From positions 1-41,795 of the forward strand of contig NIVC01004567.1 in assembly GCA_002269645.1 (NCBI GenBank): a stretch of 41,795 bases of DNA. Direction: 5' to 3'. This DNA is from Macrostomum lignano (lineage: Eukaryota). The notes beneath the pieces are model-generated. The model did not search any database. It saw nothing but the letters and a program-made list of their open reading frames with translations, and had not been told where the DNA came from. The translations under genes were made by a program, and so were the position numbers. This document shows, in pieces, positions 2,946-35,032 of this stretch (position 1 is the first letter of the stretch; every line of letters starts with the position of its first letter).

Positions 2946-3450
2946 CAGTGGCGTACGTGACAGGAGCTCAACTTTGGCCACCTCTGGGACGAAGCAGCTA
3001 CTGGCTTGAGACAGGTCGAAACGCCGACCAAGAGCCAGAGGCGCCCAACAAGAGTCAGGGCCGCCGACCAAGAGCCAGGGCCGCCGACCAAGAGCCTGGG
3101 CCACCCACCAAGAGCCAGAGGCGCCCACCAAGAGCCAGAGGCGCCCACCAAGAGCCAGAGGTGCCCACCAAGAGCCAGAGGCGCCCACCAAGAGCCAGAG
3201 GTGCCCACCAAGAGCCAGAGGTGCCCACCAAGAGACAGAGGCGCCCACCAAGAGCCAGAGGCGCCCACCAAGAGCCAGAGGCGCCCACCAAGAGCCAGAG
3301 GCGACCACCAAGAGCCAGAGGCGCCCACAAAGAGCCAGAGGCGCCCACCAAGAGACAGAGGCGACCACCAAGAGCCAGGGGCGCCCACCAAGAGACAGCA
3401 GATATTTGCGCCCCTTGGGCCGGGGTTGCGGCCCCTTTAATACGCCACTG
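2946..3450. mobile_element. Non-autonomous DNA transposon (MITE) carrying an internal 21-bp minisatellite
   Basis: Perfect 10-bp terminal inverted repeats CAGTGGCGTA (2946-2955) and TACGCCACTG (3441-3450). The termini resemble hAT/Tip100-type ends. No TSD was found. Confidence 0.7.
3022..3397. repeat. 21-bp minisatellite (CCAAGAGCCAGAGGCGCCCAC)n, ~17 copies
   Basis: Directly visible; accounts for the repetitive ORFs at 2853-3518. Confidence 0.95.
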
Positions 3451-3985
3451 ACGCACAGTCGTGCACGGTTAAAGATGGTGTTGCATGGCGAAGTCGCCAC
3501 CTGGTCTGTAATCTGCATGCAGGGACCGCTGGTAGCGACGTGAGGACAAGACAGTAGGTTTCTTGGAAAATGTCCCTAAAGTCTCAGATTGCCAGGAGAG
3601 CACACATGACTAATTTAGATCTGATAGCGACTAAACTATTTTTTTTTACATCCAGTCTGCCCTGTTGCTAAGTGTATTTCTTTCAATTCTTTATTTGTGA
3701 GGAGATTGATTTCATATTATTATTATATTTTCTGTTATGTAAAGCTTAAATATTTTTTGTTTAAATGCCTTTGACCTTCTCCTCTTATCAAGCTCAGCTA
3801 AGGCATTGGATTGATATGCATGTCTACATGTGCGTCATCGACTCCACACACCTGCACACCATTGGATTTGGACAAAGCTGATTTTGTCCGGGTAACCACG
3901 TGCGTTCGCTTTACATAGGTTTTACATACCTGAATTTCCACATGGACAAACAGATTCAGTTTTCATTGACTGGCTGAAGCCAGAA

Positions 3986-4556
3986 CGCCTATCACAACCC
4001 GAGCGCCTATCACAACCCGAGCGCCTATCACAACCAGATCGCCTATCACAACCAGATCGCCTATCACTACCCGAGCGCCTATCACAACCAGAATGCCTAT
4101 CACAACCAGATCGCCTATCACAACCAGATCGCCTATCACTACCCGAGCGCCTATCACAACCAGATCGCCTATCACAACCCGAGCGCCTATCACAACAAGA
4201 ACGCCTATCACAATCAGATCGCCTATCACAACCAGATCGCCTATCACTACCCGAGCGCCTATCACAACCAGATCGCCTATCACAACCCGAGCGCCTATCA
4301 CAACAAGAACGCCTATCACTACCCGAGCGCCTATCACAACCAGATCGCCTATCACAACCAGATCGCCTATCACAACAAGAACGCCTATCACAACCAGATC
4401 GCCTATCACAACCAGATCGCCTATCACAACAAGAACGCCTATCACAACCAGATCGCCTATCACAACCCGAGCGCCTATCACAACCCGAGCGCCTATCACA
4501 ACCAGAGCGCCTATCACAACCCCAGCGCCTATCACAACCCGAGCGCCTATCACAAC
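3986..4556. repeat. 18-bp minisatellite (CGCCTATCACAACCAGAT/CCGAG)n, ~31 copies
   Basis: Directly visible; no unit changes length. Confidence 0.95.
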
Positions 4557-5534: not shown

Positions 5535-6070
5535 ATTTGGTGTCTTGGCGTCCCTTGTGTCTTGGTTGGCGCCCTGTGTCTTGGTTGGCGCCCTGTGTCT
5601 TGACTGGCGTCCCTGTGTCTTGATTGGCGTTCCTGTGTCTTGATTGTCGTCCCTGTGTCTTGGTTGGCGCCCTGTGTCTTGATTGGCGTTCCTGTGTCTT
5701 GGTTGGCGCCCTTGTGTCTTGGTTGGCGCCCTGTGTCTTGGTTGGCGCCCTGTGTCTTGACTGGCATCCCTGTGTCTTGATTGGCGTTCCTGTGTCTTGA
5801 TTGGCGTCCCTGTGTCTTGACTGGCGTCCCTGTGTCTTGATTGGTGCCCCTGTGTCTTGATTGGCGTCCCTGTGTCTTGACTGGCGTCCCTGTGTCTTGG
5901 TTGGCGCCCTGTGTCTTGGTTGGCGTCCCTGTGTCTTGACTGGCGTCCCTGTGTCTTGATTGGCGTCCCTGTGTCTTGATTGGTGCCCCTGTGTCTTGAT
6001 TGGCGTCCCTGTGTCTTGACTGGCGTCCCTGTGTCTTGGTTGGCGCCCTGTGTCTTGGTTGGCGTCCCTG
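5535..6070. repeat. 19/20-bp minisatellite (CCCTGTGTCTTGATTGGCGT)n, ~27 copies
   Basis: Directly visible; accounts for ORFs 5285-6119. Confidence 0.95.
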
Positions 6071-8280: not shown

Positions 8281-8357
8281 ATGCGTCTCACAGTGCTGTT
8301 TCTTCTTTCTGTTTGTCTTTTTCTTGCGCTAACCAGCGACGTTGGAGAGTCCTGGGG
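8281..8357 (+). CDS. First coding exon: signal peptide MRLTVLFLLSVCLFLALTSDVGES-WG
   Basis: ATG at 8281 (aagATG). Basic n-region, hydrophobic core, small-residue c-region. The GG|GTGAGT donor (phase 2) joins the TTTCAG|A acceptor at 8479 to give WG-CGWACKR in the frame of the 585-aa ORF. Confidence 0.88.
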
Positions 8358-11300
8358 GTGAGTTTGAGTCATATTTTTGTCTTCGAATCATTCCTGCCCT
8401 TATTTTTAACAGCAAGCTTTTTCAATTAGCGTTGAAGGTGCTGAACAATCCTAACGCCTTTTTTCCACTCGCTTTCAGATGCGGATGGGCGTGCAAACGC
8501 ATGCGTCGCATCCGAGCGAGAGCCGCCAGGCTGAGGCGGCTGGCGATTCAGAGGGCCAGGGCCCTCAGGCGCCGCATCTTGCTGGCTCGGCGGAGAGCAG
8601 CCAGAGCTGCGGCAAGAGCGCGGGCCAGAGCCAGAGCTTGGGCTCGAGCCAGGGCCAGAGCTGCGGCTAGAGCCAGGGCCAGAGCCAGAGCCATTGCTAG
8701 AGCCAGGGCTAGAGCTTTAGCCAAACGGTTGGCAAGAGCCCGCGCAAGAGCTCGCGCAATTGCCAGAGCCAGAGCTAGAGCTTTGGCCAGACGTGTGGCA
8801 AGAGCACGCGCAAGAGCTCGCGCAATCGCCAGAGCCAAGGCTAAAGCTTTGGCCAGACGTGTGGCAAGAGCACGCGCAAGAGCTAGAGCCAAGGCTAGGG
8901 CTTTGGCCAGAGCAGCGGCTAGAGCAGCGGCCAGAGCAAGGGCCAGAGCTAAAGCTCGTGCCCGGGCCATCGCCAGGCGGTTGGCAAAAGCACGAGCCAG
9001 AGCTAGAGCAATCGCTAGAGCCAGGGCCAGAGCTTTGGCCAGACGTTTGGCAAGAGCTCGCGCAAGAGCTCGTGCAATCGCCAGAGCCAGGGCTAGGGCT
9101 TTGGCCAAGGCAGCGGCGAGAGCAAGGGCCAGAGCCAGAGCTCGTGCCCGGGCCGTCGCCAGAGCCTTGGCACGTGCTAAAGCTAGAGCCCGGGCTAAGG
9201 CAAGAGCTGTGGCTAGAGCATTGGCTAGAGCAAGAGCCAGAACGAGAGCACTGGCCCGAGCAAAAGCCAGAGCCCTGGCCAGGGCAGTGGCCAGAGCCAA
9301 AGCTAGAGCAAGAGCCAGAGCTAAAGCATTGGCCAGAGCCAAAGCCCTAATTCGTGCCCGAGCCCGATCTTTGGCGGCGGCGGCGGCGAGAGTAAAAGCA
9401 AGAGCCACAGCCCGAGCGAGAGCCTGGGCCAGGAGACGAGCTCTAGCCCTGAAGCGAGCCAAAGCCACAGCGAGACGAAGAGCCAGAGCTCTGGCCAGGG
9501 CCGTCGCTAAAGCAAGTAGAAGAGCAAAAGCTTTAGCTAGAGCCAAGGCTAGAAGAGTGGCCAGAGCGGCGGCAAGAGCGGCGAAGAAGATTCGAGACTG
9601 GTTCCGAAGGCGGGCCAAGCGCGGAAGAATCATCAAGAGATCAATCTACCGTCGTGTGAAGCGGCTCAAAACCCGTTTTGTCAAGTTCGTCAAGCGTCTG
9701 TTCCGCAAATGCCCACGAGGATACAAGAAGCGTGGAAATCGTTGCTACCGCCTTTACTGCCCGAAGCCGTACGTCCGCCGAGGCGCCCGGTGCGTTCGCT
9801 ACTACCGAATCTACAAGCCCCGAAAATGGTGCCCCAAAGGTTTCCGTCGAAGAGGCAGCCGGTGCATCAAGCGCATGCGCATCATCTGCGCAGCTGGCTA
9901 TCGAGTTTACCGCGGCAGATGTCACCTGGTCCGGTGCCGTCGTGGATTCATCAAGATCGGTAGAAGCTGCCGCCGCAGCTGCAAGCCCGGATTCCGACTC
10001 CGTGGCCGTTTTTGCGTTCGCTATCGCTTCCGATGCCCCAAGAACTTTTATTACCATCGAAGGCGCTGCGTCCGATTCCGCCGAGGATCGACAAGGTAAT
10101 TTTTGAAACTGCGAGTAGCATAGCATTTGAAATTGTTGCAATGCAAACCTAAGATGCGCGTGCAATTTTTTACTGTAGATGCCCGAGAGGATACCGCAGG
10201 AGAGGCAGAAAGTGCTTGCGCACCGTTCGATCGTGCCCGCTTAACTACCGCCGCCGAGGCAGGCGGTGTGTCAAGCGCTGTGCAAGCGGCCGGGTGCCTC
10301 GGCGCATTCGCCGCGGAGTGATCAGGTGCGTTGTCGTCACGTCCAAGTGCCCACTCGGTTACAGTCTGCGACGCGTGCGACGCGGAAGGCGCTACAGGTA
10401 CTTTCCTTTAGTAGCAAATGTGAATACAAGATACTTTAAGAACAAAATAAATACTAAGTATTACATCTGCTTCAGGTTCCGCTGCGTCATCAATGCTGGA
10501 AGATGTGCACGTGGATTCAGACGAGTCAAGCGATACAGACGTGGCTTTTCTTGCGTTCGCATTGTCTGCCCGAGACACTACAGGAAACGCGGATCTCGAT
10601 GCGTCTACCGACCACCCAAGGGTGGCAGCCGAAGATGTCCGGCAGGTTACAAAAAGGTGCGAGGCGTCTGCAAGAAGCTGAACTGCCCGGCCGGCTACGT
10701 GCGCAGGGGATCGCGCTGTGTGCACACCAGGTGCCCCCGTTTCTACCGCCGAGTGGGCAGATTCTGTGCCCGGATACGCTTTGTTGGCAAATGCCCAAGA
10801 GGCTGGCGCAGGACTGGCCGTCTCTGCCGCAGACGTGTGTGCCCGAGCGGCTTCAAGAAAGTTGGTCGCTACTGCATGCGTAAGTCCTTAACATAAATTG
10901 CAGTTCTCACTAAAGATGCAGTCACTTGAGCACTGGGTAATGCAGATAACCCACAACGCTTTAGCGATTTGAATCAAATAGAAATAGAATTGCGGCTTGC
11001 GATTTGCGGATATTTTATCCGACCGAACCAATTTTTCAATAAATATTTACAGGAAAATCCTGTCCATCTGGATTTGTCCGACGTGGTCGGGCTTGCTACA
11101 GAGGTGAGTTGATCCAAGCTCCTAATTGATGAATGATTCTCAGTTTTTCGAGTAAAGCGCGCAGCGACAGTTATTAAATATTGTTTTAATATTAAAATTT
11201 TAGCCCGATGCGCTCGCGGCTTCAAAAAGATGGGAAGCGTGTGCATCAGTGAGTGACTGACGGTTTTGATTTAAGTTTTAGTTTTGAACCAGTGTACAGA

Positions 11301-14300
11301 ACGCATTATTGTAACGAATTTAATTATTCGCCCTCCAGGACGCTGTCCAAGCGGCACCAGAACGACGCGGTATTTCTGCATCCGCAAGCGTTGCCCGAAA
11401 TTCTTCAGGCGCGTTGGGCAGAGCTGCGTTAGAGGTTTGATGATCTTGATGCTGACTAGATATCTTAACAATGCTGGATTAGATCTGTGCAGACAATAGT
11501 TCAAGAAATTTTCACCTGTTCCTTATGATGACCTACTTCAGCTCGCTGTCCCTCCGGCTACGTGGCCCGCTCCTACCGCACTAGAGTGTATCTCAAGCAT
11601 CGTGTTACCGGATACACCAAGAAGTGCACCTGCATTAATGGCAAATCAAGTGCCAAGCCACGGGCAAACTCCATCGATGTGGCTTTTGTAGTTGACGTGA
11701 GCGGCAGCATGGGCCGAGTCATCAGCGCCATCAAGAAAAACATTGTCAACGTCATCAACGTCAACGCTAAGTCCAGAGTGGTACGTAAAATAAAATCAGC
11801 GGAAATTCCCCCTCATCCATCAGGACAATTTGAAAATGATTAATCTTAACCTTCCACTGTGTCTCCTCAATTCAGGTGGACAAATTCATTCTCGTGCCGT
11901 TCGCGGACCCAAAAGTGGGACCAGTGACAATCAGCAGAGGTCGGTCCCGCCTGCACAAGAGCAGGCTTATCAAAGCGGTCAGGCGCATGCGAGCCAGCGG
12001 TGGCGGCGACTGTCCGGAGATGAGCCAGTCCGGCATGTACGAGGCGCTCCGGCGCGTCAAGCGAAACTCCATCGTCTACGTGTTCACTGATGCCAGTCCG
12101 TCGAGACGAGACAAACGGTTGGAAATTTCACTACTTGATTAAACAGTTATCTTTAAAATATTTGCTACAAATAAACAATCATGCAATAAACCCTTCTAGT
12201 CTAGTGCAACAAGAAAATGAAGTAAAAATAAACCATTTGAAACTCCTATTACAGACGACAGGCCGACGTGCTCCGGCTGTCGAAGAGCAAAAACGTGCAG
12301 CTCAACTTCCTGCTCACCGGTCCAATGTGCGGCAAAAGGAATTCGTACAAAAACTTGTCAAAGAAATCGAAAGGTGCCTGGATCAAAATGAAAAGGTCGA
12401 CAACGTACCGCGTTTTGCGCTTCCTCAGCAAGGCCATCCCCAAGGGCGCCACCGCTCTGAGGATGCTGAACCGGCGCGGACTATCCTCATTCATCAAAGC
12501 AAGGAAAACATGCACTTGCCACCGCATTGCCAGAATGAAGGCCCGTTACAAGTACGTCAGCTCGGTGAAATGCTTTGTCAGGCCTCGGCCAAGCACTGGC
12601 CGCTGCTCCAGAATCCTGAACCAGCGAAGGCGACTAAGACGCGCGGCCCAGCTTTACCGGCGTCGCATGCGAATTGGCAGGCGGTCAGCGCGGCGAAGAA
12701 GCGCCAGGCGATTCCGGGCAGTCAGAAAGCAACTGCGAGCGATTGCAAGAAACCTGAGACGCTGCTACAGAAGCAAAACAAGAAGTAAGACGGGCAGCTT
12801 CAAAATTTTCAAAATATAAAATTATTTAAATGCTAAGGAAAATTCAGAATTAAAAAAACTATATTTTCGTCAAAGTACTCTCTTGCAAAAGGAACTAACA
12901 AAAAGTCACTAGGATTAAGTTCTAGAGTGGAGTGTATGAGACCAGTATATTATATAATGCTGTGTCAATCTACAGAATAGTTGAAGCAAAGAGACTGATG
13001 AAGAAAACATAAAACTCGTTTCTTTTTAATAACCTTCAGATTTGTGCAGAAAGGTCAGATGCGGACGGGGTAGACGCTGTTTCGTCCGAAACATGCGCCG
13101 CCGTTTCGGATCTGTCTACCGCTACGTCAGAACCGCATCCTGCAGGCCTGTCAGGAGTAAGAATTTTTTTGTAATCCTTCTGGTTCATTCAAGTATTTTA
13201 AGGAGACAAATTCAGTCTCTGAATAACATCACTTTGTGGCAAAAACTGTTTTATAGATCTGTGCAGAAGAGTCCGGTGCAAGTCGGGTTATCGGTGCCGA
13301 GTTTCATACCAGCGCAGAATAGTGACCCGCAGGGTGACTCGATTCGTCAGAAAGTGTCCATGCCGCAAGGTCCTGGTTAAGCCATCCGCCTCCAAAAAGA
13401 AGACAGGCCTGGTCGACATGGCGTTCGTTGTAGATACCACAGGAAGCATGGGCAGAGTCATCAAAGGAATCCGGTCAAGCATCAAGCAGATTGTGGCTGC
13501 AAACAGGCGTACAGTCAGTCGCTTCGTCATCTCTGCTTTCAATGATCCAAAGGTAAGGATTAAAACACAACAAGTGAAGTATGGACTCTCCAATCCCAAT
13601 AACAGAAAATACAATGACACTTGGGATCAACGTCGTTTTTTTTCAGGTTGGTCCAATTACTGTCAGCTCAAGAGCCAGAACAATTTTTGCCGCAGTGAAC
13701 AGACTTAAACCCAGAGGAGGTGGCGACTGTCCTGAAAGGAGCATGAGCGGTATTCTTGCTGCCGCTAAGCGAGTGAAGTCCGGATCGGTCATCTACGTGT
13801 TCACGGATGCAAGCGCAAAAGACAGAGGAAGGAGGCGTCAAGTAAGCTAATGGATAAGTTATTGTGTTCAGTTTCTGATTAGTAGTCCTTGGCAACTGCA
13901 CAAAAGGTTTCCTGTTTTTAAAAAAAATGCATACTTTCCACTACTTTCAGGTTCGAGAAATTGTGAAACGGAAGTCCCTCCAAGTGATGTTCATCATCAC
14001 AGGTCGATTGTGCGGCCGAAGCTACCGCAAGGAGTACCAATATGTGTCGAGAGGCAACGGCCGGGTTATAAAAACAACAAGTGGACGCATCAAGAAGGTG
14101 CTCAGCTTCATCCAAAAAGCGGTCAAGTTAGGAAGCCGCCGACTGAGGCGCTTGAACCTCTCTCACCTGTCGAAGTTCATCCGCAAGTGCCACTGTCGCC
14201 GCGTCAAACAGAGGGTCACAAGAAGATACACTAGAACCAGGCGAGTGGCCAAGTGCACAAAGAGACCAAAGGGAGCTTGCTCATCGCGAAGATGCAGTAA

Positions 14301-17300
14301 GGGCTACAAGTGTGTGCACTATCGAGTAAAAACACGTCGAGGCAGCGGACTTAAAACACGATGTGTCAGCATCAATAGTGAGTATTTCTTCTCCAATATA
14401 ACCCTGCCTCTTCACTAAACTTTAACCTTTGCTCAAAAACTCAACAAAACTTTCTCTAGACCCATGCAAGAAAATGCGTTGTCAGAAAGGACGCAAATGC
14501 ATTGTGCGCTTCTTCGGAAGAGTCTACAAAAAAGGAAAACGGCGTGTTAAGTTGGTGCGCAAAAAAGCCGTCTGCGTCAAGCGAATATCAAGTAAGATAT
14601 ATTTAATAGGCTGAAAAACTTTGACCTGTAAGAAAAATTGCAACACTTCAACATCATCAAAAACCTGTAGACCTGTGCAGAAGAGTTCGTTGTGGAAGAT
14701 ACAGGCGCTGCATTGTCCGAAGACTGAGAAGAGGATCACGACGCATGGTAGCACGATGTGTAGGTCCAAAGCCAAAAGGTAAGCTCTAAGCAGAAAAATT
14801 GGTATTTTATATTCATCTTGAGCCAGCTAAAAACTTTTGCCCCAGTGCGATACTCCACTCACTTGGTAGGCAACGCCACTCAAAATATCAAAGACGAAAA
14901 ACATTTTAAAAACTTACAGGTAAGTGCGGCCGACGAACCTGCCGAAGGAACCAGAGGTGCGTGACACGAAGATCTAGCAGGCGAATCCGAAGCCTCAGAA
15001 GAAGCATCAACAAACTGCGACGAGCTCACAGGAGCAGGACTGTCGCCGAGAGACGACGACATGCAGCCTCCATCCGAAAGAGCCGAACACCAGCTCGCTA
15101 CCGCCGTAAGCAATACTACTGAAACTGCTTTTTTGGCAACATGTAACAACGCTAGCGAATATAAATGCATTTCGTGTTCAGTATTTCGTTTTGGTTGTTT
15201 ATATCACGCTTTCACTTTGCATACTTCTCCGCTTCAGGAGTGCGAGTGAAGCACGCTTGCGAGGGCAAATCTCTGACCATCAGATGTCCATCCAGATACG
15301 TCATCCGGGTGCTGCGCGGATTCTATGGCAGAACATCTAACAAATACTGCGCTCGAGGACCCCGCAAGACATACAAGTGCAGCAGCGGCCGAGCCAACAA
15401 AGTCATCGCTTCCAAGTGCAACAACCGGCGAGCATGCAGGGTGCGAAGCAACAACGCCGTCTTCGGAGATCCTTGCCGCGGAACATACAAGTACATGACC
15501 GTGAGGTACAGATGCCAGCTGGCTTCATCGGTTGTGTCTAGCTACGCGAAGCGCAGAGCTCGACTTGCACGACTGCACAAGAGACGATTGAACGCTCTTC
15601 GATCGAGGCACAGGCGCAGAGTCGCTCGACTGATCCGACTGCTGAGACGAGCTAGACGAGGATCGAAGAGATGCGTCCGAAGGAGACGACCTTCCAGAGG
15701 TTAGTCGGCTATTCGGTCGACCGTTTATTTAAAGCAAAACAAATGCAGAAATTATTGATGCCCCACCTAGTAAATTGCTTCCTCAAATATCTAGTGAGAC
15801 TTTGAGCTACGGATTTTAGAGTTGAAGCACTTTCACCGAAGTTCATACGTTGCTCCTCACCGAATCACAACATACTTAGGCAAGAAATGCGGCCGACGAA
15901 CCTGCCGAAGGAACCAGAGGTGCGTGACACGAAGATCTAGCAGGCGAATCCGAAGCCTCAGAAGAAGCATCAACAAACTGCGACGAGCTCACAGGAGCAG
16001 GACTGTCGCCGAGAGACGACGACATGCAGCCTCCATCCGAAAGAGCCGAACACCAGCTCGCTACCGCCGTAAGCAATACTACTGAAACTGCTTTTTTGGC
16101 AACATGTAACAACGCTAGCGAATATAAATGCATTTCGTGTTCAGTATTTCGTTTTGGTTGTTTATATCACGCTTTCACTTTGCATACTTCTCCGCTTCAG
16201 GAGTGCGAGTGAAGCACGCTTGCGAGGGCAAATCTCTGACCATCAGATGTCCATCCAGATACGTCATCCGGGTGCTGCGCGGATTCTATGGCAGAACATC
16301 TAACAAATACTGCGCTCGAGGACCCCGCAAGACATACAAGTGCAGCAGCGGCCGAGCCAACAAAGTCATCGCTTCCAAGTGCAACAACCGGCGAGCATGC
16401 AGGGTGCGAAGCAACAACGCCGTCTTCGGAGATCCTTGCCGCGGAACATACAAGTACATGACCGTGAGGTACAGATGCCAGCTGGCTTCATCGGTTGTGT
16501 CTAGCTACGCGAAGCGCAGAGCTCGACTTGCACGACTGCACAAGAGACGATTGAACGCTCTTCGATCGAGGCACAGGCGCAGAGTCGCTCGACTGATCCG
16601 ACTGCTGAGACGAGCTAGACGAGGATCGAAGAGATGCGTCCGAAGGAGACGACCTTCCAGAGGTTAGTCGGCTATTCGGTCGACCGTTTATTTAAAGCAA
16701 AACAAATGCAGAAATTATTGATGCCCCACCTAGTAAATTGCTTCCTCAAATATCTAGTGAGACTTTGAGCTACGGATTTTAGAGTTGAAGCACTTTCACC
16801 GAAGTTCATACGTTGCTCCTCACCGAATCACAACATACTCAGGCAAGAAATGCGGCCGACGAACCTGCCGAAGGAACCAGAGGTGCGTGACACGAAGATC
16901 TAGCAGGCGAATCCGAAGCCTCAGAAGAAGCATCAACAAACTGCGACGAGCTCACAGGAGCAGGACTGTCGCCGAGAGACGACGACATGCAGCCTCCATC
17001 CGAAAGAGCCGAACACCAGCTCGCTACCGCCGTAAGCAATACTACTGAAACTGCTTTTTTGGCAACATGTAACAACGCTAGCGAATATAAATGCATTTCG
17101 TGTTCAGTATTTCGTTTTGGTTGTTTATATCACGCTTTCACTTTGCATACTTCTCCGCTTCAGGAGTGCGAGTGAAGCACGCTTGCGAGGGCAAATCTCT
17201 GACCATCAGATGTCCATCCAGATACGTCATCCGGGTGCTGCGCGGATTCTATGGCAGAACATCTAACAAATACTGCGCTCGAGGACCCCGCAAGACATAC

Positions 17301-20300
17301 AAGTGCAGCAGCGGCCGAGCCAACAAAGTCATCGCTTCCAAGTGCAACAACCGGCGAGCATGCAGGGTGCGAAGCAACAACGCCGTCTTCGGAGATCCTT
17401 GCCGCGGAACATACAAGTACATGACCGTGAGGTACAGATGCCAGCTGGCTTCATCGGTTGTGTCTAGCTACGCGAAGCGCAGAGCTCGACTTGCACGACT
17501 GCACAAGAGACGATTGAACGCTCTTCGATCGAGGCACAGGCGCAGAGTCGCTCGACTGATCCGACTGCTGAGACGAGCTAGACGAGGATCGAAGAGATGC
17601 GTCCGAAGGAGACGACCTTCCAGAGGTTAGTCGGCTATTCGGTCGACCGTTTATTTAAAGCAAAACAAATGCAGAAATTATTGATGCCCCACCTAGTAAA
17701 TTGCTTCCTCAAATATCTAGTGAGACTTTGAGCTACGGATTTTAGAGTTGAAGCACTTTCACCGAAGTTCATACGTTGCTCCTCACCGAATCACAACATA
17801 CTCAGGCAAGAAATGCGGCCGACGAACCTGCCGAAGGAACCAGAGGTGCGTGACACGAAGATCTAGCAGGCGAATCCGAAGCCTCAGAAGAAGCATCAAC
17901 AAACTGCGACGAGCTCACAGGAGCAGGACTGTCGCCGAGAGACGACGACATGCAGCCTCCATCCGAAAGAGCCGAACACCAGCTCGCTACCGCCGTAAGC
18001 AATACTACTGAAACTGCTTTTTTGGCAACATGTAACAACGCTAGCGAATATAAATGCATTTCGTGTTCAGTATTTCGTTTTGGTTGTTTATATCACGCTT
18101 TCACTTTGCATACTTCTCCGCTTCAGGAGTGCGAGTGAAGCACGCTTGCGAGGGCAAATCTCTGACCATCAGATGTCCATCCAGATACGTCATCCGGGTG
18201 CTGCGCGGATTCTATGGCAGAACATCTAACAAATACTGCGCTCGAGGACCCCGCAAGACATACAAGTGCAGCAGCGGCCGAGCCAACAAAGTCATCGCTT
18301 CCAAGTGCAACAACCGGCGAGCATGCAGGGTGCGAAGCAACAACGCCGTCTTCGGAGATCCTTGCCGCGGAACATACAAGTACATGACCGTGAGGTACAG
18401 ATGCCAGCTGGCTTCATCGGTTGTGTCTAGCTACGCGAAGCGCAGAGCTCGACTTGCACGACTGCACAAGAGACGATTGAACGCTCTTCGATCGAGGCAC
18501 AGGCGCAGAGTCGCTCGACTGATCCGACTGCTGAGACGAGCTAGACGAGGATCGAAGAGATGCGTCCGAAGGAGACGACCTTCCAGAGGTTAGTCGGCTA
18601 TAATTGTCTTGTTTTTATTAATTTTTGTAGATTTGTAAAAACCTTTTTCTAATTTCTTTTTTTTGGTTTATATTGTTATTGAAAATACCTGCACCCGATT
18701 TTTAGGTTTGTGTGCTAAAAAACGGTGCTCCAAAGGCAAGCGTTGCATTGTGAAACGAACTATCACAAAAGCGGGCCGTAAATTTCACTCAGAGAGACGT
18801 AGAATGACCAAAGGATATCGCAAGCAGATTCGAGCTCTGAAACTAAGGTTTGTAAGAAGTCGGCGATCTGCAAAGTTGTCTTACGGACGGGCATCAGCTG
18901 CTTTTAAGAAGGCTATTCGGAAAGCATCTAAGGCGAAGAAAGCTGCCTCTGTTAAGAGCTTGAGAAGATCCTGGAGACTTCGCAGAAGATCTTACGTTTT
19001 GAAGCTTCGTAAAGAAAGAAGAAAGTTCTTGAAGGCTAGAAGAAGTCTCAGCCTGCGTTTTAGGCGTAGCCTATCAAGCCATTCTCGAAAGAATCGAAGA
19101 ACTAAGACTGCTGTACGAGCTGCTGTTTGTGTAGTGAATCAATGTTCAAAAGTCAAGTGCAAGTCGGGATTCTCTTGCAGGCATGTGAGGCGGTTTACAA
19201 AGAAGTTTAGCGCATTCCTTCGTCAGAAACGAGCTTTGACAAAGTCTTACTTTGCCAGTCACAAGAAGATCACGTTGGCTTACCGAAGAAGAAGTCGCCA
19301 AGCTGCAAGAAACTTCCGCAAGTATGCCGCAACTTATCGCTCGAGCTTCAAGCGAGCAAAATCTGGCAGTGCGAAGAAACGTCTCAGAGTTGCGTTCCGT
19401 CGTCGAGTAAGAAGCTTCAGAAGAAGTAGGCGCGCAGCTTTCAAGCAGTATCGTCGCTCAGTACGACTGGCTAGGCGCCGCTTGGCTCAAAGGCTTAGAT
19501 CACTGCGTAAGAAGCAAGGCAAGGGAGTTTTCAAGAACCGCGTTAGGACTGTGGCTCGATGCATCAAAAAGGCGACGAGTGAGTGCTTTGTTTTTTTTAA
19601 CTGCGACAGATATTTTAGTTACACTACTGCAATATACCTGCATTTCTTTTCGCCCACCTTTGCATATCTAGGATCCTGTCGAAAAGTTCGATGCTCAGCT
19701 GGAAAGCGCTGCGTGGTTAAAAAAGTTCCAACTTGGTGGTACAGGCTTTACCGCATCAGTGTGAAGAGGGCCTACAGACGGTTCCACACCCGGCTACGCC
19801 GCACTGTGCAAAAACTCCGACACCGACACAGAGTGCACCGTAGATTTTTGGCACGGAGAAGCAGAAGAGCAGGAAAATCATTTTCTTTCTGGCTAAGACA
19901 CGCTTTGAGACGCATTCGCAGATCCCGGCGCTCTCGAGTCCGTCGTGTTCGCAGGTCAAGGCGTAACCTGAAAAGATTTGTTAGAAAATTGCGACGAGCT
20001 CGCTCTCGACTGTGGGGAAGGTTCAGAAGAGCTGCAAGGCGCTATGGAAGGCGATTCAAAAAGCTTTTTAGAAAATTCTCTCGACGAAAGGGACGGCGTG
20101 GACGTTCTTCTCGTAGACGACGCGTTCCAAAATCAGTTGTTCGCCGATTCAGAAGGAATCAGAAGAAGTACGCCAGACGCGTCTTCTCATTGAAAAGCTG
20201 GTTCGGAAGAAAAGCGAGAATTTTCAAGGCTCTGTATTACAAGTCTAAAAAGGCGACCAAAGCAGCAAAGAAATCGATCAGGAAAAAGATGCGCTCTTTG

Positions 20301-23300
20301 TATAGAAGAATTTCCAGGGTTTATCGAAGAAGACTGAAACGAGCTGTGGTTTCGTACTACAAGAAAAAGAGCATCCTTGCAACCTCTCTACAAAGAAGGC
20401 TTCGAATGTTGCGCAAGCGACTTGGCAGACGCAAGGGACGGCGATTTATTCGTCGGGCCATGTGCGTTGCCAAAAATCCTTGCAGAAGAAAGCGCTGTAG
20501 ACGGGGATACAGGTGCAGAGTGCGCAGAGTCAAGTCAAAGAGGGGTCGAAAAATCACTGTTGGACGCTGCGTCAGAAAGTCTAGTAAGTAATCGTTATGT
20601 TAATTCAATAAATAGCAATATTTGCTATTCCTTCTGCCCATAAGCTCGTATTATTTCCGAATGAGGCAAACAGTGCATGATATTTTTTTAATTTCAGATC
20701 CATGCAGCAGAAAGAAGTGCGGAAAGAACCGTCGCTGTGTGGTGAGAAGGATCCCAACTCGAGCCTTCCGGCTGTACCGCTTCTATCTAAGAGTCAGTAG
20801 GAAACGTTTCCGTCTTCGAATGCATGGCATACGCAGGAGGCTTGGCCGTAGGCGTCGACGTCTGGCGGCCCGCGCTATCCGTCGAAACCGACGCTTGAGA
20901 CGATCAGCCGCTCGGCGATTCCGAGGCCGACGACGGGCAAGACGCTTCCGAAGTTTGAGACGGTCACTGAAGCGCACTCTTCGAAGGCATCGCCGTCGTT
21001 CGACCCGGTCGTACCGACGAATTCGCAATAAGCTAAGACGGCGTCTGAGACGCGCCACAAGGCGACAATACAGACGACTCATGCGAAACAAACGGCGCTA
21101 CATTACCCGCGCCGTTTGTGCACCAAAGAGAGCAAGTGAGTCACATAATTTCATTTTTTCTCACATGCGGTTTCTTGCACTTAGAGACGCGAGAGAGATA
21201 TATTATTTTCCGATCAAATTCATTCAGATCCATGCAGTAAGAAGCGCTGCCCAAGTGGATCCAGGTGCGTCGTGCGCAGAAGAGTTCCAAGGCTGTACAG
21301 GCGCTTCAGAAAAATCGTAAAGCGTCGCTATAGAAGATACGCTATTGCAAGGCGCCGGCTCTCCAAACTTAGTCGCAGAAGACGAGCGGCAACTGCTAGA
21401 AAGTTGAAGCGTTCCCTGAAAAGAAAATTGAGAAAGATCTGGAAAACCTTTAAAAGACGCGGAGCCTTTAAACGAAGTGGGCGTTTGGTAGCTCGCTGTT
21501 ATAAGCCAGGAAGTAAGTTGACAAAGGCCCGAGATATTCGCTTGCGGCTTGCGCATCGCTAACTTATGCTGTCTCTGAATTTTAGAGTTTTGCCCGAGCG
21601 GATACCGTCGCCGGGGACGAACTTGCGTCGGCTACTATCGGGTGTGCCCGCGAACTTTCACTATGATTAGGAACAAGCGCGGAGGGCGGTGCATCAGTAA
21701 GCCAATTTTATTGTATAACGACTAGGAAAGCTTTCTCAAAGACTTTCCAGCGATTATCATAGATTATTAACTATTGCTCTCAAAAAAAATATTGCAGAGT
21801 TCAACAAGATTTGCAAGTCCGGCAAATTTTTGTTCAATAACCGCTGTTGGCGAAAATGCCCTCGTGGCACCAGACGCTCATCAAGACGGTCCTGCAAGCG
21901 TAAGTTAAAAAGGGGCGTTGTCTAGTTTTTTTGTGATTCTTTACTTATTGGTAAAGCAGAATATCAATACTCAACCTGGCATTGCGTAATACGGTTTTAG
22001 TTGTCAAGTCATGTCCTGCATTCATGCTCAGTAGACGATGCGTCAAGAGATGTCCAAGAAGATTCGTCGCGGTGGGTCGTCGATGCAGGCGTAAGTTTAG
22101 AAGTCTGAAAACAATCCTATGCTTTACTGCCTTTTGAACCGATTTCACAACTAGCCAAAATGTTTTTTACAGGATGCCCACGAAACTCTTTCCGACGAGG
22201 AAACAACTGCTACCGTGAGTAAATTCATTGTTAAAAACCAAATCTTGACTACTGACTCGTACAACAGAAATTTTTTGCTTACCGCGTTGCTTTCGGTTGG
22301 TGTATTACAGGCCGCAGAATTTACTGCCGCTCTGGATTTTCTTACCGAGGAAGATGCAGAAGTAGATGCCCGGCCCGCACTTATGCAAGAGGACGAAGAT
22401 GCATCCGTAAGTATTGCGCAAGAGAGCAAGCAGTCCAATGTCTGTGCAAAAACAAAAAAATCATTCAACCATCCAGTACAATAGTGGATTAATGCAATCA
22501 GCTACGACAAATTTTAGGAGCTCGCTGTCCACGCGGATCAAAGGCCAGACTCAGCATCCGAAGGGGCAAAATCGTTTGCATAAGTATGAACTATTTGATT
22601 TTTATATGCGGTTTAGAAGCGGGCTGCTTTTTAAATACGAACTCATTCTCATCTTCTGCATTTCCCTTTGCAGGAAAGCGCGGTTGCAAGCGTGGCCTGG
22701 TTTACTACTCTGGCTCTTGCCGATCGAAGTGCCCCAGTGGAACCGTCGACGACGCTGGTACTGCCTGAAGATCTGCAAGAAGGGCTTCATGAGAGTGGGA
22801 TTCCGCAGACAGAGATGCATCCGGGCATACTGCTACAACAAGTTCCGCATTGGCCGGTCCTGTGTGAGAAAGTGCCCAGTCGGCTACATTGGAATTCGAC
22901 GAAAGTGCCGAAGAGTTTCCATCTCGTGTCCCAAGGCCTACGTTAGGCTTGGCCGCGCGCTCTGCCTCAGAAATTGTCCAGCCGGTTTCACCAAGAGGGG
23001 CAAACAATGCGCGTACTCCGCCTGCCGCAAGGGAACATACAGGTACCGAGGCACCTGCATGAAGGGCTGTCCAGCTGGAACAAAGCGACGAGGATCGTAC
23101 TGTTTCAGTAAGTTATTTGCCTGTTCAATGTAGCATGATTTAACCCTTTCAACGTCATAAAAGTTATTCCACACATCTAAAATTTTAGAGAGAAGCAAAT
23201 GCCGCTTTGGTCGCTTCGCCTACGGAAAGCGATGCCTGGTGAGGTGCCCGCCTGGTCACTATCGAAGCTTTGCTAGACGATCGTGTGTCAGTGAGTATTT

Positions 23301-26300
23301 CTCTTTGATTCGGCTATGCTTCTCTTAGCTGTAACCGCTAATTCGATATACGCTATTCAATTGCTAAATCAAAACATTTCAAATCTCTTATATACATCGA
23401 TTATGTTCCAGGAATCAAGCACTGCAAAAAAGGTCTGCTTAGATTCAGAAGACTCTGTCTCAAAACGTGCCCTCTTGGCTTCCGAAGAAAGAGACGAAGC
23501 TGCGTACGAAAATACGTCTGCCGAAACGGAAAGATGTACAGAGGAGTCTGCATCGTTACCAAATGTCCTTCTGGAACTCACAACATTCGAGGATCGTGCG
23601 TTCGCACGCGTAAGTCTGATTAAAGGGTTGAATGAGGGATTAATTAATTGCAAAGCGCAATGACCAACTTACAAACATCTTTTTTTTCATTCCATCTTAG
23701 CTCGCCTCTGCCCGTCTGGTAGGCTGCTGCTAATCAAGCCGAGTGGTGCTAGATCTTGCGTTCGAGCCTGCCCAAGGACCTACACAGTTGTTAGGTCGCG
23801 GGGCTCTTGCAAGCCTACACGCTGTCCAAAGGGCATGTACCGTCTGGGAATAACATGCAGAAAGTCCTGTCCCAAAGGATTCCGTGCTCGAAGAGGTCGC
23901 TGTAGAGCTGTCAGAAAGAGCTGCAAAGACGGCCTGTTCCGACTCCGCAGGCGTTGTGTGAAGCGATGCCCAAGAGGCTTCAAGGCCAGAGGAGGTCGCT
24001 GTAGACGAGTGCCTTTCAGATGCAAGAAAGGAACTTTCAGGTTCAGAAGGCGTTGCGTCAAGAAATGCCCGAAAAAATACACCGGTCGCGTCTACAAGCG
24101 GGCGAGAAGAGCGCCAGTCCGATACTGCAGGCCTATTAGAAGCTGCAAGAAGGGACAAGTGCTCGTTTACAGACGGTCACGGAGTCGCTACAGGTCAAGA
24201 TGTGTCAGTGCAAGCAAGCCTTGCAAAACTGGTTACGTGCTGAGAAGACGTGTCGTACGATTTAATAGAGGCGGAAGGAGGGTGCGCAGAGTGCTAAGAC
24301 TGTGCAAGAGAGCCAGGGAAAGCTGTGCCAAGGGATTGTTCTTGTTCCACGCCAAGTGCAGAAAGCAGTGCCCAAGAGGAATGAGGACATTGTTGGTTAG
24401 ACGATCAAGAAAAGTTGTCCGCACATGCAAGCCAAGTAAGGCCGTGATTTCATCTGATTGAATAGAGAGAATTCTATATTTCTAGAAAATAGTGTCTAAA
24501 AAGCTAATTTGCATACAAACTTTCAGAATGCGGTAGAAAGTTTGCTTTCCGAAGCAAATGCGTCAGAAGGTGCCCACGTGGATACACAGCAAGAAGATTC
24601 AGGTTTATCAAGTTCTGCAGGAAAGGTGCGAGTTAAATTTAATAAAGTGCCTGATTTAACAGTATGCTAATGGAATATCTCCAGTTTCACTTACAAGCAT
24701 CGATTTAAACATTTCAGATTGCCCCAGAGGAAGATTCGCGTTCAGAAATTCGTGCATCTCGCGGTGTCCAGCAGGCTACAGAAAGCGAAGATATCGAGTG
24801 TATTCCAGACGATCAAGAAAGCTTGTTTCCATCACCAGCTGCGCCCGGAAAACTAGTAAGTTGGCTAGCCCTGATGCTTAACCGAGACAACCTTTAATAA
24901 CTGTCAATAAATATTTCATTATTTTCTCTATTGTAGAATGCCCATCAGGATACCGAATAGTGTATCGTCTCAAGCGAAGTGCTAAGGGCAGGTCAATCCG
25001 ACCAACTAAGGTCTGCAGACCAGGTATTTTTTTAGCTTTTTGTCCTTCGGATAAGCAAGTAAAGGCGTAGCAAGCATAATAAAAATTAACTATAACAACC
25101 TATATTTCTTCAGTGAGACAGAAGAGCTGCAGATATCCAACTGCACTTGCCTTTGGTCGCTGCTTCCGCCGTTGCCCATCCGGTTACTACAGACGGTCCA
25201 GAACTGTTCGCGGGCGAAGACTTGGATTCTGCCTGCCAACAAAGCTGACAGTCCTTTGTCGCCGCCGTCGCTGCGGCAAGACAAAGATGTGCATCATCAG
25301 CCGAAGAACGAGAGTTTTCAGGGCCGGAAAGCGAGCAGTTCGTCGAACTGTACGAAAGCCCGTCTGTGTTCCACGATGTAAGAAAGAACATATTCTGTGC
25401 TTAAGATGCATGACTGTTATTTAAGTTTTTTAAATCGACTTCTGAATTTCCCATTTCCCTGCAGACTGCAAAGCCGGAACCTATCGTCACAGGCGCAGAT
25501 GCGTTCGAAAGTGTCCACGCGGCTACATTAAACGCTCTTCGAAGCGTTTCAGAATGCACAAGGGCCGCAGAATGGCATACAAAGTGAGACTCTGCACGAG
25601 GAAACTGTGCAGGTATCCCATGGCCAGATATAGCACACGATGCGTTAAGCGTTGCCCAAGCAGATATGAAAAGAAAGTATATCGCCTCAGATTCCGCTAC
25701 AGGCGATCGAAGTTCATCAGACGCTATGCTGTATGCCGACGCAATCTCTGCTCAAAGGTCTCCTGTTCAAGAAACCAGAGGTGCATTGTAAAGACTCTTC
25801 CAGGGCGCAAAGATCGGCAAGTGGCTGTTTGTGCTAATAAAAACCCGTGTGCCCGGATGAGGTGCCGACGAGGATTTAAATGCCGAATTAGACGAGTATC
25901 TGGGCGCAAACGAGCATCATGTGTTCCTTCTATGCCTTTCTGCAAGGCTGGATTAGTTGGCTTTGGCAAACGATGTCAGCGGCGTTGCCCTAAAAATTAT
26001 AGGGTTTTGAGCAAGAAGATCGGAGGACGACTGTACAGAATGTGCGCCAGAGACGCATGCTCACGAGGCCGATTTTTCTCAAGTGGACGATGCGTGCCGC
26101 GCTGTCCGAGTGGCTTTGCTGGAAAATCTATCAGGTATTCTAGGTCATACATCTTCAAGTACTGCGCTCCGAAAGCTTGTAAGCGCAGACTGTTTAGACT
26201 TGGCGGACGCTGCGTGAAGCGCTGTCCTTCAGGATACAGGAGACGATACTTCAGGGCTAGACGAGGTGTTCGAAGATACTGTGCCTCATCTGCCTGCAGG

Positions 26301-29300
26301 AAAGGAACATATAAGCTTGGAAAGCGTTGCGTCAAGAACTGCCCAAAGAATTACAACAAGAAAACAGTAAGAAAGGGGTCGAAATCTTATGCAGCTTGTG
26401 TGCCCAAGAAATGCCCCGCCAAGTCTATGTTTATTAAGGGTCGCTGCAGAAAAGCATTGAAGGGCTGCTACGATAGGACATTCGCTTGCAAGGGTTGGGC
26501 TAGAAAGAAACGGTGCTCAAAAAAGCTGGTTAAGTACTTGTGTCCAGCGTCCTGTGGCACCTGCAATCCTAAGAAGAGAAAGCTCTGCACCTGCATATCC
26601 ATGGGCGATCCACACTACCGTACATTTGATGGAAAATGGATCCACTTCATGGGAAAATGCAAGTATCTGTTGGCCAAGTCCAAACTACGAAAATCTTCTA
26701 GGTGCAACTTCTCTGTTGCAGCAAAGAATGAAGTTCGTGGAAAGAGACGAAGAGTCAGCTGGACAAAATTCGTTGACATTAACATTCATGGATTGTCTAT
26801 CCGCTTGCACCAGAAACGTCGTGTCTTCTTCAACGGCAAGAGAGTTCGAAGGCTACCTGTTTCGCTCTACAAGAGAGGCAAGAAGCTTCGAGTTTACCGT
26901 AGTGGAAATAATGTTGTTGTTGAATCAAAGTACTGCGGCTTGTATCTTGAGTTCAATGGCAGATCAGTGGCCGAACTGCACCTTCCAAAATCCCGGTTCG
27001 CTGGAAAGGTTCAGGGCATCTGTGGAAATTGCAACGGAAATCCTAAGGATGATTTGAAAACCAGAAGTGGAAAGGATGTCTCCAAGCTTGGTTCAAAGGG
27101 ATTCGTGCAGATCGGACAATCCTATCTTGTCGCTGACCGTTCCACAAAGAGCTCGCGATGCAAAGTCAAACCTGCATCAACATCAAAATGCTCAAAATCA
27201 ATGAAGCGAAAGATCAAATCTAGCAGATTCTGTGGCCTTATTTCAAACAAGAAGGGGCCATTCAGAGCTTGCTTGAAATCCGGAAAAGTTGATTATACCA
27301 AGATCTATAAGAGCTGCAAGTTTGACGTTTGTCAGTACCGAAAAGCTAAAAATCGCCGAAAGGCTGTGTGCGAGTCCCTGGAAACTCTTTACAACGCTTG
27401 CCTGGCCAAGGGATTCCGAGTGAGCTGGAGAAAACGCCGGTTCTGTCCATTGAAGTGCGGTGCCAATTCTGTATTCAGAAGAAAAACAAGTGGCTGCCCA
27501 AGAACATGCGCCGATCTAGGTCGACGAAGAAAGTGCCGTCTGCCATCCCGAGAAGGCTGCGCCTGCAAAGAAGGCTACGTACTCAATGGAAAGAAGTGCG
27601 TCCCCGAAAGAATCTGCGGCAAAACAGTGCCACTTGATCTGGCCTTCGTTGTCGACGGAACAGATGACGTCAGTTCAGATGAGTTTGAAACACTGAAGAA
27701 CTTGATCATCAAGCTTCTTACAAAGTACAGACTGTCTTCTAACTCTGTACGACCAGCAATTGCAGTGTTCGGCAGAACAAGCCCAACTGTAAGTCTGTTT
27801 AACCAGCGCCCCGGAAAAGCTGACTTCATGGCATTCGTCAGAAAAATGAAGAAACCAGGAGGATCAGCTGATAACTTGGATGCCGCTCTCCGGGTTGCCA
27901 ACAAGGTGATGATGAACCCAATGGGAGGCGCAAGACCAGCGGTTCCAAAGTATATTCTGTTATTGAAGAAGAGCAAAGTTCCAGCGTCATCGGAAAGTGT
28001 TGTCAAGAGCGAACTAGATTCGCTGAAAAAAGCTAACGTCCACGTGGTTGCTGTCACTCTCCCACCAACAAAACCAGGAAAGACCGACACGGCTATTGGT
28101 GGATTGTCAGTTATCCCAGCACGAGTGCCACCGTATCTTGCAATCCCGAAGATCACCAAGGAGCTGGAAAAGACAGCTGGCTGTACTTCTGGATATAAAC
28201 GACAAGGCAAACGCTGTATAGATGTGAACGAGTGCGCAGCAAAGGTACCACCATGCCATTCTGACAGCACCTGCGTCAATTTGCCAGGCAGCTTCATCTG
28301 CCTCTGCCGCGAAGGCTTCCGACATGACAGATCCCGTGGATGTGTGTCTCTGAAGAAGGAGAAGTGCCCAAGCAAACCGAAATGCGACAATGGCTACCGC
28401 TTTGATAAGGCAAAGGGCAAGTGTGTTGACATCAACGAATGCAAAGAGAATCCGTGCTTGGGTGATAGTGCTACTTGCGTCAATACACCAGGCAGCTTCA
28501 AGTGCAAGTGCAAGACTGGTTTCGAGTACAACAAATACTTTGGTTGCGTTGACATCGACGAATGCAAGGGAAAAGATCCTTGCGCTGGTTCCGGAAAGTG
28601 CATCAATACACTTGGCTCGTTCAAGTGTACCTGCGACGAGGGTTACACTTACAAAACCGGTCTCGGCTGCAAGGATATCGATGAGTGCGCAGCTGGATCG
28701 CATAACTGCAAGGGCGGTTCGAAGTGCATCAACACGGCTGGTTCTTACAACTGCAGCTGTGACTCCGGCTATCGCTACGAAAGCAACAAGTGCATTGACA
28801 TTGACGAGTGCGCTGAGGACAGCAAACTCTGCGACGCATCTGCCACATGTGTAAACAAGAAGCCAGGCTATGAATGCCAGTGCAAACTTGGCAGCAACTG
28901 GGTGCACAAGGCTGGAAGAGGGTGCGTGCCAGATGAGAAGAAGGGAATGTCTCAACGAAAGGTTGATTTTATCTTCACCATTGATGGTAGCGACAAGCTG
29001 AAGTCATCTGAGAAGGACATCAAGGATTTCTTGACCCGCCTGCTCAATAAGTTTAAAGCCAATGAGTTGAAGGGTCTGAGCGTGCGTGCATCGGCCATTA
29101 TTATGGGCAAAAGGGAGGTGCGGATATCAAATTTAGCCAAGCTGACCTGTCTGGAATCGATGACAAGATCAAGGCGCTTAACTTCCCTGGAGGAAAGGCA
29201 AACCTTCTCGACGGAATGAAGAAGGCAAATCGGGAGCATGCAAAGGCCAGAAACGGAAGCACGCCGATCGTGTTCCTCATCACTGGTTCGAACATTAAGC

Positions 29301-35027: not shown

Positions 35028-35032
35028 GCGGA

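Follow-up and report, generated by a model that had tools for sequence, protein, structure and literature searches.

The DNA discussed in this article, which I will refer to as the window, is a 41,795-nucleotide contig of the flatworm Macrostomum lignano (NIVC01004567.1), and its central feature is one gene of approximately 23 kb on the + strand, with a product that I estimate at approximately 5,000 residues. The N-terminal part of this gene encodes a 360-residue stretch in which Ala alternates mainly with Arg (the Ala-Arg block), and it was this block that an original prediction, made from the letters of the sequence, had singled out. As I will argue below, the block most likely belongs to an overlooked coding exon at the genuine N-terminal end of a giant protein that is expressed and secreted. 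This N-terminus is absent from all of the gene models searched, because an older contig ended inside the gene and because repeats break transcript assemblies. The features of the gene are collected in Table 1; automatic exon chaining was reliable for exons 1-3 and for the stretches guided by protein models, and unreliable at 10.9-15.2 kb and 21.3-23.9 kb, which are therefore reported as domain-bearing stretches only.

Table 1. Features of the giant gene, in window coordinates.
Feature	Position	Strand	Details
Exon 1, coding part	8281..8357	+	Start codon and signal peptide MRLTVLFLLSVCLFLALTSDVGESW(G); three-frame translation, donor scan
Intron 1	8358..8478	+	121 nt, phase 2, GTGAGT ... ttttttccactcgctttcAG
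Exon 2	8479..10095	+	Short CGWAC start, Ala-Arg block, irregular basic linker, first Cys/Arg repeats; open reading frame 8342-10099
Ala-Arg block	8510..9589	+	360 codons, (Ala-X)180; X = Arg/Lys ~69%, Leu/Ile/Val ~19%; net charge +142
Three canonical 66-nt/22-residue units	8660..8857	+	..ARARARARAIARARARALA[K/R] R[L/V]..
Two further canonical 22-residue units	8978..9109	+	4-residue offset relative to the first set
Irregular basic linker	9590..9709	+	KKIRDWFRRRAKRGRIIKRSIYRRVKRLKTRFVKFVKRLFRK; aligns with the end of the paralog linker (BLASTP against P0264)
First Cys/Arg repeats	9710..10095	+	CPxGYxxxGxxC type; 61% identity to paralog (tblastn)
Exon 3	10179..10879	+	Further Cys/Arg repeats
Exons of two VWA_4-like domains	11341..14581	+	tblastn with P0263/P0264; Pfam VWA_4 5.8e-20; colinear with paralog
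Four tandem 963-bp units	14925..18602	+	Each a SUEL-lectin exon and a basic Cys exon (Pfam)
Arg/Lys-rich exons and more Cys/Arg repeat exons	18706..25376	+	Limits approximate at 21.3-23.9 kb
VWD, TIL, VWA, 5 EGF-Ca, second VWA, FN2 and C-terminal exons	25467..31224	+	Pfam; exact mapping of P0030

The reading frame that carries the block (8342 modulo 3, + strand) is open from 8342 to 10099. By count, the 360 block residues are 167 Ala, 121 Arg, 25 Leu, 21 Lys, 10 Ile, 8 Val, 3 Thr, 2 Trp, 2 Ser and 1 Gln (46% Ala, 34% Arg, 6% Lys and 12% Leu/Ile/Val), and Asp, Glu, Pro, Gly, Cys, His, Asn, Met, Tyr and Phe do not occur at all. Asp, Glu, Pro and Gly together have a frequency of 0.121 gene-wide, at which a 360-residue run free of all four has a probability of ~7e-21; the claim that the block is devoid of acidic residues, Pro and Gly is correct. 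The alternation is strict: Ala occupies 152 of the 180 positions of one parity, the opposite parity holds 124 of the 142 basic residues (binomial p ~1e-20), and in the regular core of the block every Leu, Ile, Val and Trp shares the parity of the basic residues, such that a period of 2 dominates the spectrum (power of 31-52 for basic residues and Ala, versus at most 1.1 at any helical period). Thus the alternating block of approximately 360 residues was rightly described, with Ala on every second position and a correct start at 8510, and only its proposed end needs to be shifted, since 9590 is already the first base of the following codon.

The case that this block is translated begins with the exon that precedes it. 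Exon 1 ends with the donor GG/GTGAGT at 8358 (the slash marks the splice site), has an in-frame stop 23 codons upstream of the ATG at 8281, and encodes MRLTVLFLLSVCLFLALTS, judged by eye to be a signal peptide, in which a basic start is followed by a 15-residue hydrophobic core and which is homologous to MRLALLLLSALLFVTVFC, the start of the annotated paralog BOX15_Mlig001212g3 (P0263, P0264 and P0266; SUEL-type lectin domain proteins in UniRef). This paralog was found by a search with the downstream exons and has a model that includes the N-terminus; there, too, a phase-2 intron follows the signal-peptide exon in the corresponding position, and both the sequence ATGCGTCTC and this intron position are common to exon 1 and the paralog, as is the start region ACAAGATGCGTCTC. 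On the other side of intron 1, a strong pyrimidine tract, of a kind that the purine-rich Ala-Arg block lacks throughout, marks the acceptor ttttttccactcgctttcAG at 8478, and the split codon GG+A preserves the frame of the block, while the size of the intron and its cag/A TGC acceptor context agree with annotated introns of the same gene. Exon 2, for which a Pfam scan returned no family, ends with the donor AAG/GTAATT at 10096, followed by an 83-nt intron with its acceptor, ctgtAG, at 10178. Within the open reading frame 10216-10896, an AT-rich stretch at ~10398-10475 is bounded by CAG/GTACTT and CTGCTTCAG/G and has no counterpart in the paralog protein; it is probably a small unannotated intron in exon 3.

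The paralog also provides a view of where the block came from. After its linker, the paralog continues with CPAGYKRRGNMCFRVYCPKPYVRRGAKC, which aligns with CPRGYKKRGNRCYRLYCPKPYVRRGARC of the window in the same exon as the Ala-Arg block, and the alignment of exon 2 to the paralog reaches 47% identity over 247 residues (BLASTP; the value for the repeats is given in Table 1). The linker of the window has 417 residues compared with 117 irregular residues in the paralog, and it is filled with 41% Ala where the paralog uses Ser, Ala, Val and Thr; both are 33% Arg. Since the paralog has a short irregular linker at the same place, the Ala-Arg block is, judging from this comparison, a paralog-specific expansion inside a pre-existing polybasic linker, and since the Arg content is equal while sequence and length differ, the alignment suggests that charge density is the property under selection. 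Over its remaining length the gene stays colinear with both the paralog and the model P0262, proceeding from Cys repeats through two VWA_4 domains, SUEL, Arg/Lys-rich sequence and further Cys repeats to VWD and the C-terminus. On the locus of the paralog (NIVC01000061.1), there are also large same-strand gene calls at 1-2785 and 18136-23590 (458 and 1542 residues), running off the locus, neither of which has a Pfam match; they could be additional members, or additional parts, of this family of basic proteins.

Downstream of the block, the exons that could be fixed are likewise very basic (~22% Arg, 11% Lys and 3% Asp+Glu), and the domain assignments include VWD (2.5e-31) and TIL (3.3e-9; both Pfam, window open reading frame), with FN2 contributed by the models P0030 and P0262. 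To zonadhesin-like proteins, the VWD region shows 30-43% identity, and C8 (PF08742) is not reported by Pfam for the window open reading frame or for P0030, though present in most homologs. The gene ends with the stop codon TAA at 31222-31224. As proposed, this is a flatworm gene, since the large open reading frame 25554-29216 is 100% identical to the M. lignano hypothetical protein BOX15_Mlig000911g1 (P0030). That annotated protein begins inside the gene, at 23970, because the older contig NIVC01001495.1 ends at window position 22782; over 14 kb (window 22782-36769) the two contigs are 99.93% identical, and all 9 differences are insertions or deletions. The UniRef model of this gene, P0262, begins at a SUEL unit. 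The SUEL units themselves merit a comment, as copies 1-3 differ by one base and copy 4 diverges after ~548 bp, and the older gene models have one unit only, the copy number being possibly collapsed there or inflated in the window. Similarly, the window reads GGG at 29111-29114 where NIVC01001495.1 reads GGGG, which shifts the frame to a stop at 29217; the probable cause is an error in the homopolymer run of the window, and the footprint peptide FSQADLSGIDDK (at 29132) backs the frame of the older assembly.

Such footprint peptides provide protein-level evidence for the gene. Dataset S2 of the M. lignano adhesion study reports mass spectrometry of the footprints that are left on the substrate (PMC6410801), and its first sheet (footprints_Trypsin_intact_1) contains the entry {RNA815_38}{RNA1310_79.1}, with 3,590 residues, 418.9 kDa and an isoelectric point of 11.47, with 18 supporting peptides from one run and 6 from a second. 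Of the 19 distinct RNA815_38 peptides, 18 have exact matches in + strand exons of the region 15447-30633, and the one left over crosses the junction between exons at 30854/31135: CQLASSVVSSYAK and SNNAVFGDPCR fall in the SUEL units, AAVCVVNQCSK and YPTALAFGR in the stretch of Arg/Lys-rich and Cys/Arg repeat exons that follows, and 15 peptides in addition to the junction peptide in the VWD to C-terminal exons. The transcript RNA815_38/RNA1310_79.1 is therefore this gene, partly annotated as BOX15_Mlig000911g1, and the gene product is made and present in the deposited material, a statement that holds for the downstream exons only and not for the Ala-Arg exon, which trypsin would reduce to di- and tetrapeptides and which lies beyond the reach of an entry of 3,590 residues. 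The in-phase signal-peptide exon and the presence of these other protein parts in the footprints both bear out the expectation of a secreted product. Literature searches for Ala-Arg repeats, for Macrostomum SUEL lectins and for the gene and transcript identifiers returned no paper discussing this protein, and RNA815_38 is absent from the searchable text of papers and from the supplements of the positional RNA sequencing paper.

How rare is such a block? The exon was compared with 5.8 billion protein clusters (word-indexed search) and with 1.84 billion representatives (HMMER), and the block comparison was made on the best 150 matches listed. Neither search yielded a protein with the Ala-Arg exon or a true homolog of the block, a negative that is limited by the composition corrections of HMMER, which may hide pure (AR)n proteins. 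The whole-exon search matched bacterial Ala/Glu/Arg low-complexity sequences (TolA and MidA-linked repeats), which were rejected on reading as compositional, and those of the 674 HMMER matches that cover the block are Ala-rich low-complexity sequences, mostly bacterial Ala/Glu/Arg/Lys repeats. Identities to these bacterial repeats (TolA domain II type) amount to 40-57% across 200-300 residues and stem from Ala and Arg, but nearly all of the repeats contain Glu/Asp or far less Arg, and those with few acidic residues (for example the Ala/Asn/Lys repeat P0225, or P0014/P0170) have far less Ala+Arg, such that on sequence grounds they are compositional matches and not homologs. Among the best 150 matches listed, none has a comparable acid-free (AR)n block, and the best acid-poor 200-residue window contains 46% Ala+Arg versus 80% in the block, which justifies calling this cationic block unusual. 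A search of PDB sequences with the exon also returned low-complexity matches only (a Spt20 SEP-domain protein, TCERG1 and eL29). HMMER matches to residues 410-530, by comparison, are Cys-repeat proteins; the best-scoring match, P0115 (an ENA metagenome protein of 1846 residues), covers the Cys repeats only and, with 22% Lys, 9% Cys and CPKGYKKVGKSC-type repeats, is a Lys-rich counterpart of the Arg-rich repeat of the window.

Within the two-residue alternation there is a longer unit, which is also seen at the level of DNA. Tandem Repeats Finder (TRF) reports a 66-nt period in the block (7.4 copies, 73% match), the hydrophobic positions have their top autocorrelation at a lag of 22 residues (0.33), and 15 of the 25 hydrophobic residues co-occur at this lag, a count reached by 0 of 20000 permutations. 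When the residues are set out in rows of 22, the canonical unit has the consensus R-[L/V]-ARARARARAIARARARALA-[K/R]. The 22-residue unit with its 8/4/10 spacing of hydrophobic residues, as described in the original prediction, is consequently real, but there are only ~5 canonical and 2 partial copies of it: the unit is retained in only ~40% of the block, and the C-terminal 40% is (AR)n with irregular spacing. The 5 canonical units are 81% identical in DNA, and 79 of their 125 differences lie at third positions; counted by codon, there are 72 synonymous to 29 non-synonymous differences in the Ala-Arg frame and at most 17:81 in four other frames. Furthermore, the block draws on the full set of 4 Ala and 6 Arg codons (for Arg, 86 AGR and 35 CGN), and it is thus not a plain (GCCAGA)n microsatellite. 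As the 22-residue period equals the DNA duplication unit, it would on this view be mainly a duplication fossil and not proof of a coiled coil.

Before turning to function, it is useful to place this protein among known systems. Secreted proteins with hundreds to thousands of acid-poor polycationic residues have been described in flatworms, namely Mlig-ap1, Mile-ap3 and Tmed-ap3, whose Lys/Arg-rich (GRK) regions are attached to or work with VWD, TIL, EGF and lectin domains, as here (PMC6410801; PMC8621496; PMC9229212). Mlig-ap1 comes from the same species and the same footprint mass spectrometry dataset, and it has Gly/Arg/Lys-rich regions, a C-type lectin, VWD-C8-TIL and 17 EGF modules (PMC6410801; PMC8621496). 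The gene described here is not Mlig-ap1: a six-frame translation of the window contains neither of the published repeat and antibody peptides SRKPRRKNRKSRKP and KSRKVN (84 copies in Mlig-ap1), and the domains are different, with SUEL lectins, VWA and FN2 here and no C-type lectin in the Pfam results for the window open reading frames or for P0030/P0262. In addition, the filler of the ap1 and ap3 regions (Gly, Ser, His, Pro and Asn) suggests disorder, whereas the block, with its 46% Ala in strict alternation, suggests helix. RNA interference and localization are available for Mlig-ap1. Mlig-ap1 has been compared with the sea star protein Sfp1 (PMC6410801). With Sfp1, zonadhesin, IgGFc-binding protein and the gel-forming mucins, large secreted proteins of a cohesive or gel-forming nature, the protein of the window has modules in common, namely galactose-binding (SUEL) lectin, VWD, TIL and EGF-Ca. 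We know of no report of an Ala-Arg block, or of such an extreme positive charge, in any of them.

Proteins with long helices or basic tails offer further comparisons. ER/K single alpha-helices (SAHs) are similarly long, uninterrupted, rich in Arg/Lys and free of Pro and Gly, but they need salt bridges from Glu to Lys/Arg at i to i+4, and with 0 Asp/Glu in 360 residues the block does not belong to this class. Periodicities of 22 = 2 x 11 residues, which give a straight face on an 11/3 helix, occur in exchangeable apolipoproteins, alpha-synuclein and group 3 late embryogenesis abundant (LEA) proteins, and type I antifreeze helices are Ala-rich with 11-residue repeats; all of these have mixed charges and a broad hydrophobic or Thr face, with Pro punctuation in the apolipoproteins. 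No sequence similarity between the block and these amphipathic repeat proteins was found in Pfam (no match) or in the PDB search (low-complexity matches only). Protamines and the Ala/Lys-rich tails of histone-H1-like proteins are Arg- or Lys-rich, condense polyanions and fold on charge neutralization. A protamine-like protein, small, nuclear and lacking a secretory signal, was rejected as an identity for the block, which follows a signal peptide in a protein of several thousand residues with extracellular domains.

Taking these observations together, I consider it somewhat probable that the Ala-Arg block is a translated, N-terminal, polycationic low-complexity module of a giant secreted M. lignano protein, and that this module binds polyanions. 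A GCN-AGR hexanucleotide expansion inside the linker, followed by the 66-nt higher-order unit, would have generated the block, with selection keeping Ala/Arg identity and charge density. After secretion into seawater, the acid-free chain without Pro and Gly (+142, and ~54 nm long if helical) would bind polyanions through its guanidinium groups, candidate partners being glycans with sulfate or carboxylate groups, the anionic partners that have been proposed for flatworm glue, and anionic surfaces, and charge neutralization would favour the helix. The block would then add electrostatic cohesion to a network in which the VWD, VWA, lectin and EGF parts could provide covalent (disulfide) and glycan-mediated links, in the way of zonadhesin-like and mucin-like proteins and of sea star Sfp1. 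A role in electrostatic cross-linking or coacervation, as put forward in the original prediction, is inferred by analogy to Mlig-ap1, whose Lys/Arg-rich regions are proposed to bind polyanions and for which heparin blocks attachment and removes the protein from footprints (PMC6410801); a similar role is proposed for the polycationic ap3 proteins of other flatworms (PMC9229212).

Several observations weigh against this reading. The Ala-Arg exon itself has neither transcript nor peptide support, the searched part of the footprint mass spectrometry tables yielded no peptides from the gene's 5' half, and because the old contig ends at 22782, the sequence and length of the block are those of the window assembly alone. 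The footprint samples also hold tubulin and vitellogenin-like proteins, so presence there is no proof of an adhesion role. The paralog manages without the block, the specific form of which may not matter, and the AlphaFold confidence described below is low. Finally, the synonymous ratio of an antisense (Ala-Leu)n frame is just as good (71:27), and this frame is excluded by context only. The codon-position test rules out four frames but cannot fix the strand, because the third positions of the Ala-Arg and antisense Ala-Leu frames coincide; what decides the strand is the signal-peptide exon, together with the splice sites and the homology of the sequence into which the open frame continues.

Of the rival explanations, one is that the block is outside of the mature protein altogether, being skipped by alternative splicing, a by-product of a GC-rich minisatellite, or the antisense (Ala-Leu)n open reading frame at 8548-9636. 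The missing RNA and peptide support and the ratio of the open antisense frame fit with this, other minisatellites in the window also give long spurious open reading frames, and the AGR codons of the block supply 87 in-phase AG dinucleotides, each of which would keep the frame as a 3' splice site with the phase-2 donor, such that shortened, length-variant in-frame isoforms could exist. Yet it is the acceptor at 8478 that has the strong pyrimidine tract and the usual sequence context, the frame, open over 539 codons, is homologous at both ends to the annotated paralog, the antisense frame has no exon context, and the 29% of Arg codons that are CGN amount to Leu-to-Arg changes on the antisense strand, all of which makes this explanation very unlikely in my opinion. 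An alternative that accepts translation but moves the function inside the cell is that the block condenses the protein with acidic glycans in secretory granules, in the manner of a protamine, and perhaps has no role after release. The extremely basic nature of the whole protein would suit such packaging, as would the sharing of Arg content and not of sequence between the paralogs, and polysaccharide-rich vesicles with charge-based interactions have been described for M. lignano (PMC6410801). However, the analysis pointed to neither a partner in the granules nor a loss of the block by processing, no R-X-K/R-R processing motif being obvious in it on reading (no scan was run), and I regard this packaging role as unlikely.

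The remaining rivals concern the shape of the chain. AlphaFold2, run on the exon-2 product alone without an alignment, returned a single helix over residues 2-379 and no strand, with a mean predicted local distance difference test score (pLDDT) of 60.4 and a predicted template modelling score (pTM) of 0.21, and this model, like the composition, which is rich in helix formers and free of Pro and Gly, suggests that the block is probably helical. The very long helix of the original prediction therefore gains some weak support from the model, to be set against these low scores and against a strongest sequence periodicity of 2 and not 3.6. The same prediction offered a hendecad-type (11/3) coiled-coil rod, in which a stripe of Ile, Leu and Val with the adjacent Ala would form a straight seam for the packing of two or more helices into a long charged rod and the 22-residue unit would have been selected for structure. 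In the regular core (225 residues), the helical moment of the hydrophobic residues is indeed 0.705 at 98.18 degrees per residue, compared with 0.17 at 100 and 0.09 at 102.9; the three bulky residues per 22 lie within 98 degrees on an 11/3 helix at positions that, taken modulo 11, match the hendecad positions a, d and e, and the 360 residues contain no helix breaker and are modelled as helix. This fit is less telling than it seems, since 1 in 5 of the 165 placements of three residues on 11 X positions is equally tight, and a period of 3.67 is indistinguishable from 4.4 when the bulky residues are all on one parity. Moreover, only 3 of 22 residues are bulky, two Arg lie inside the stripe, and the nine positive charges per 22 residues have no acidic partner and oppose self-association, which is thus unlikely without counter-ions; together with the partial retention of the unit and its identity with the DNA duplication unit, which counts against structural selection, this leaves the coiled coil doubtful. 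An extended or beta polycation, with Ala on one strand face and Arg, Lys and Leu on the other, could form silk-like Ala-faced sheets or a flat ribbon, cationic on one side, for lying on anionic surfaces, and the dominance of period 2 (the pattern of an amphipathic strand), the single parity of Ala and the low confidence of the helix prediction would all be compatible with it. But Ala, Arg and Leu are strong helix formers on textbook propensity scales, the AlphaFold model is free of strand, beta-branched residues are few (18 of 360), and period 2 follows directly from the hexanucleotide repeat, so a beta form appears quite improbable. Lastly, the block may be a switch that is triggered by polyanions, disordered or loosely helical as long as its charges repel one another and forming ~54-nm rods on sulfated glycans or seawater sulfate, which would bundle along the Ala/Leu/Ile seam; I offer this as a speculative and, for now, unlikely extension of the polyanion-binding module. 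If true, it would mean a structural class not described before among domains for adhesion or cohesion under water, and a natural template for two-letter helical polycations.

Beyond the gene, the window contains several other repeats. Upstream are minisatellites at 1992-2345, 3022-3398, 3980-4556 and 5545-6070, with periods of 8, 20, 18 and 20/139 nt, which give long spurious open reading frames on both strands (for example CDRRSG and PITTRS repeats) and have no evident coding context. Downstream are arrays at 34203-35027 (a 23-mer x 36), 35447-35661 (a 22-mer x 10) and 37378-37577, the last being (GACT)50, which encodes (SVSQ)n and lies inside a - strand open reading frame (37258-38157) with weak, below-threshold matches to TRADD-like_N and DUF1997.

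Temporary adhesion in flatworms is now explained by two giant proteins and by charge interactions of a polycationic cohesive protein with anionic partners, and the gene described here adds a third giant polycationic protein in the footprint material, one that published work has in a supplementary table only. The Ala-Arg block belongs to a known kind, the polycationic low-complexity domains of flatworm secreted proteins, in a design that is unseen among the best database matches: unlike the known Gly/Arg/Lys regions, this polycation uses two residue types and contains neither helix breakers nor counter-charges. Should the block be only a tolerated repeat expansion, it would be a linker with a conserved charge density (33% Arg in both paralogs) that is free in sequence and length. 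If it is translated and helical, it would provide a simple natural sequence for studying binding, condensation and coacervation by Arg polycations in seawater, and an easy motif for synthetic adhesives.

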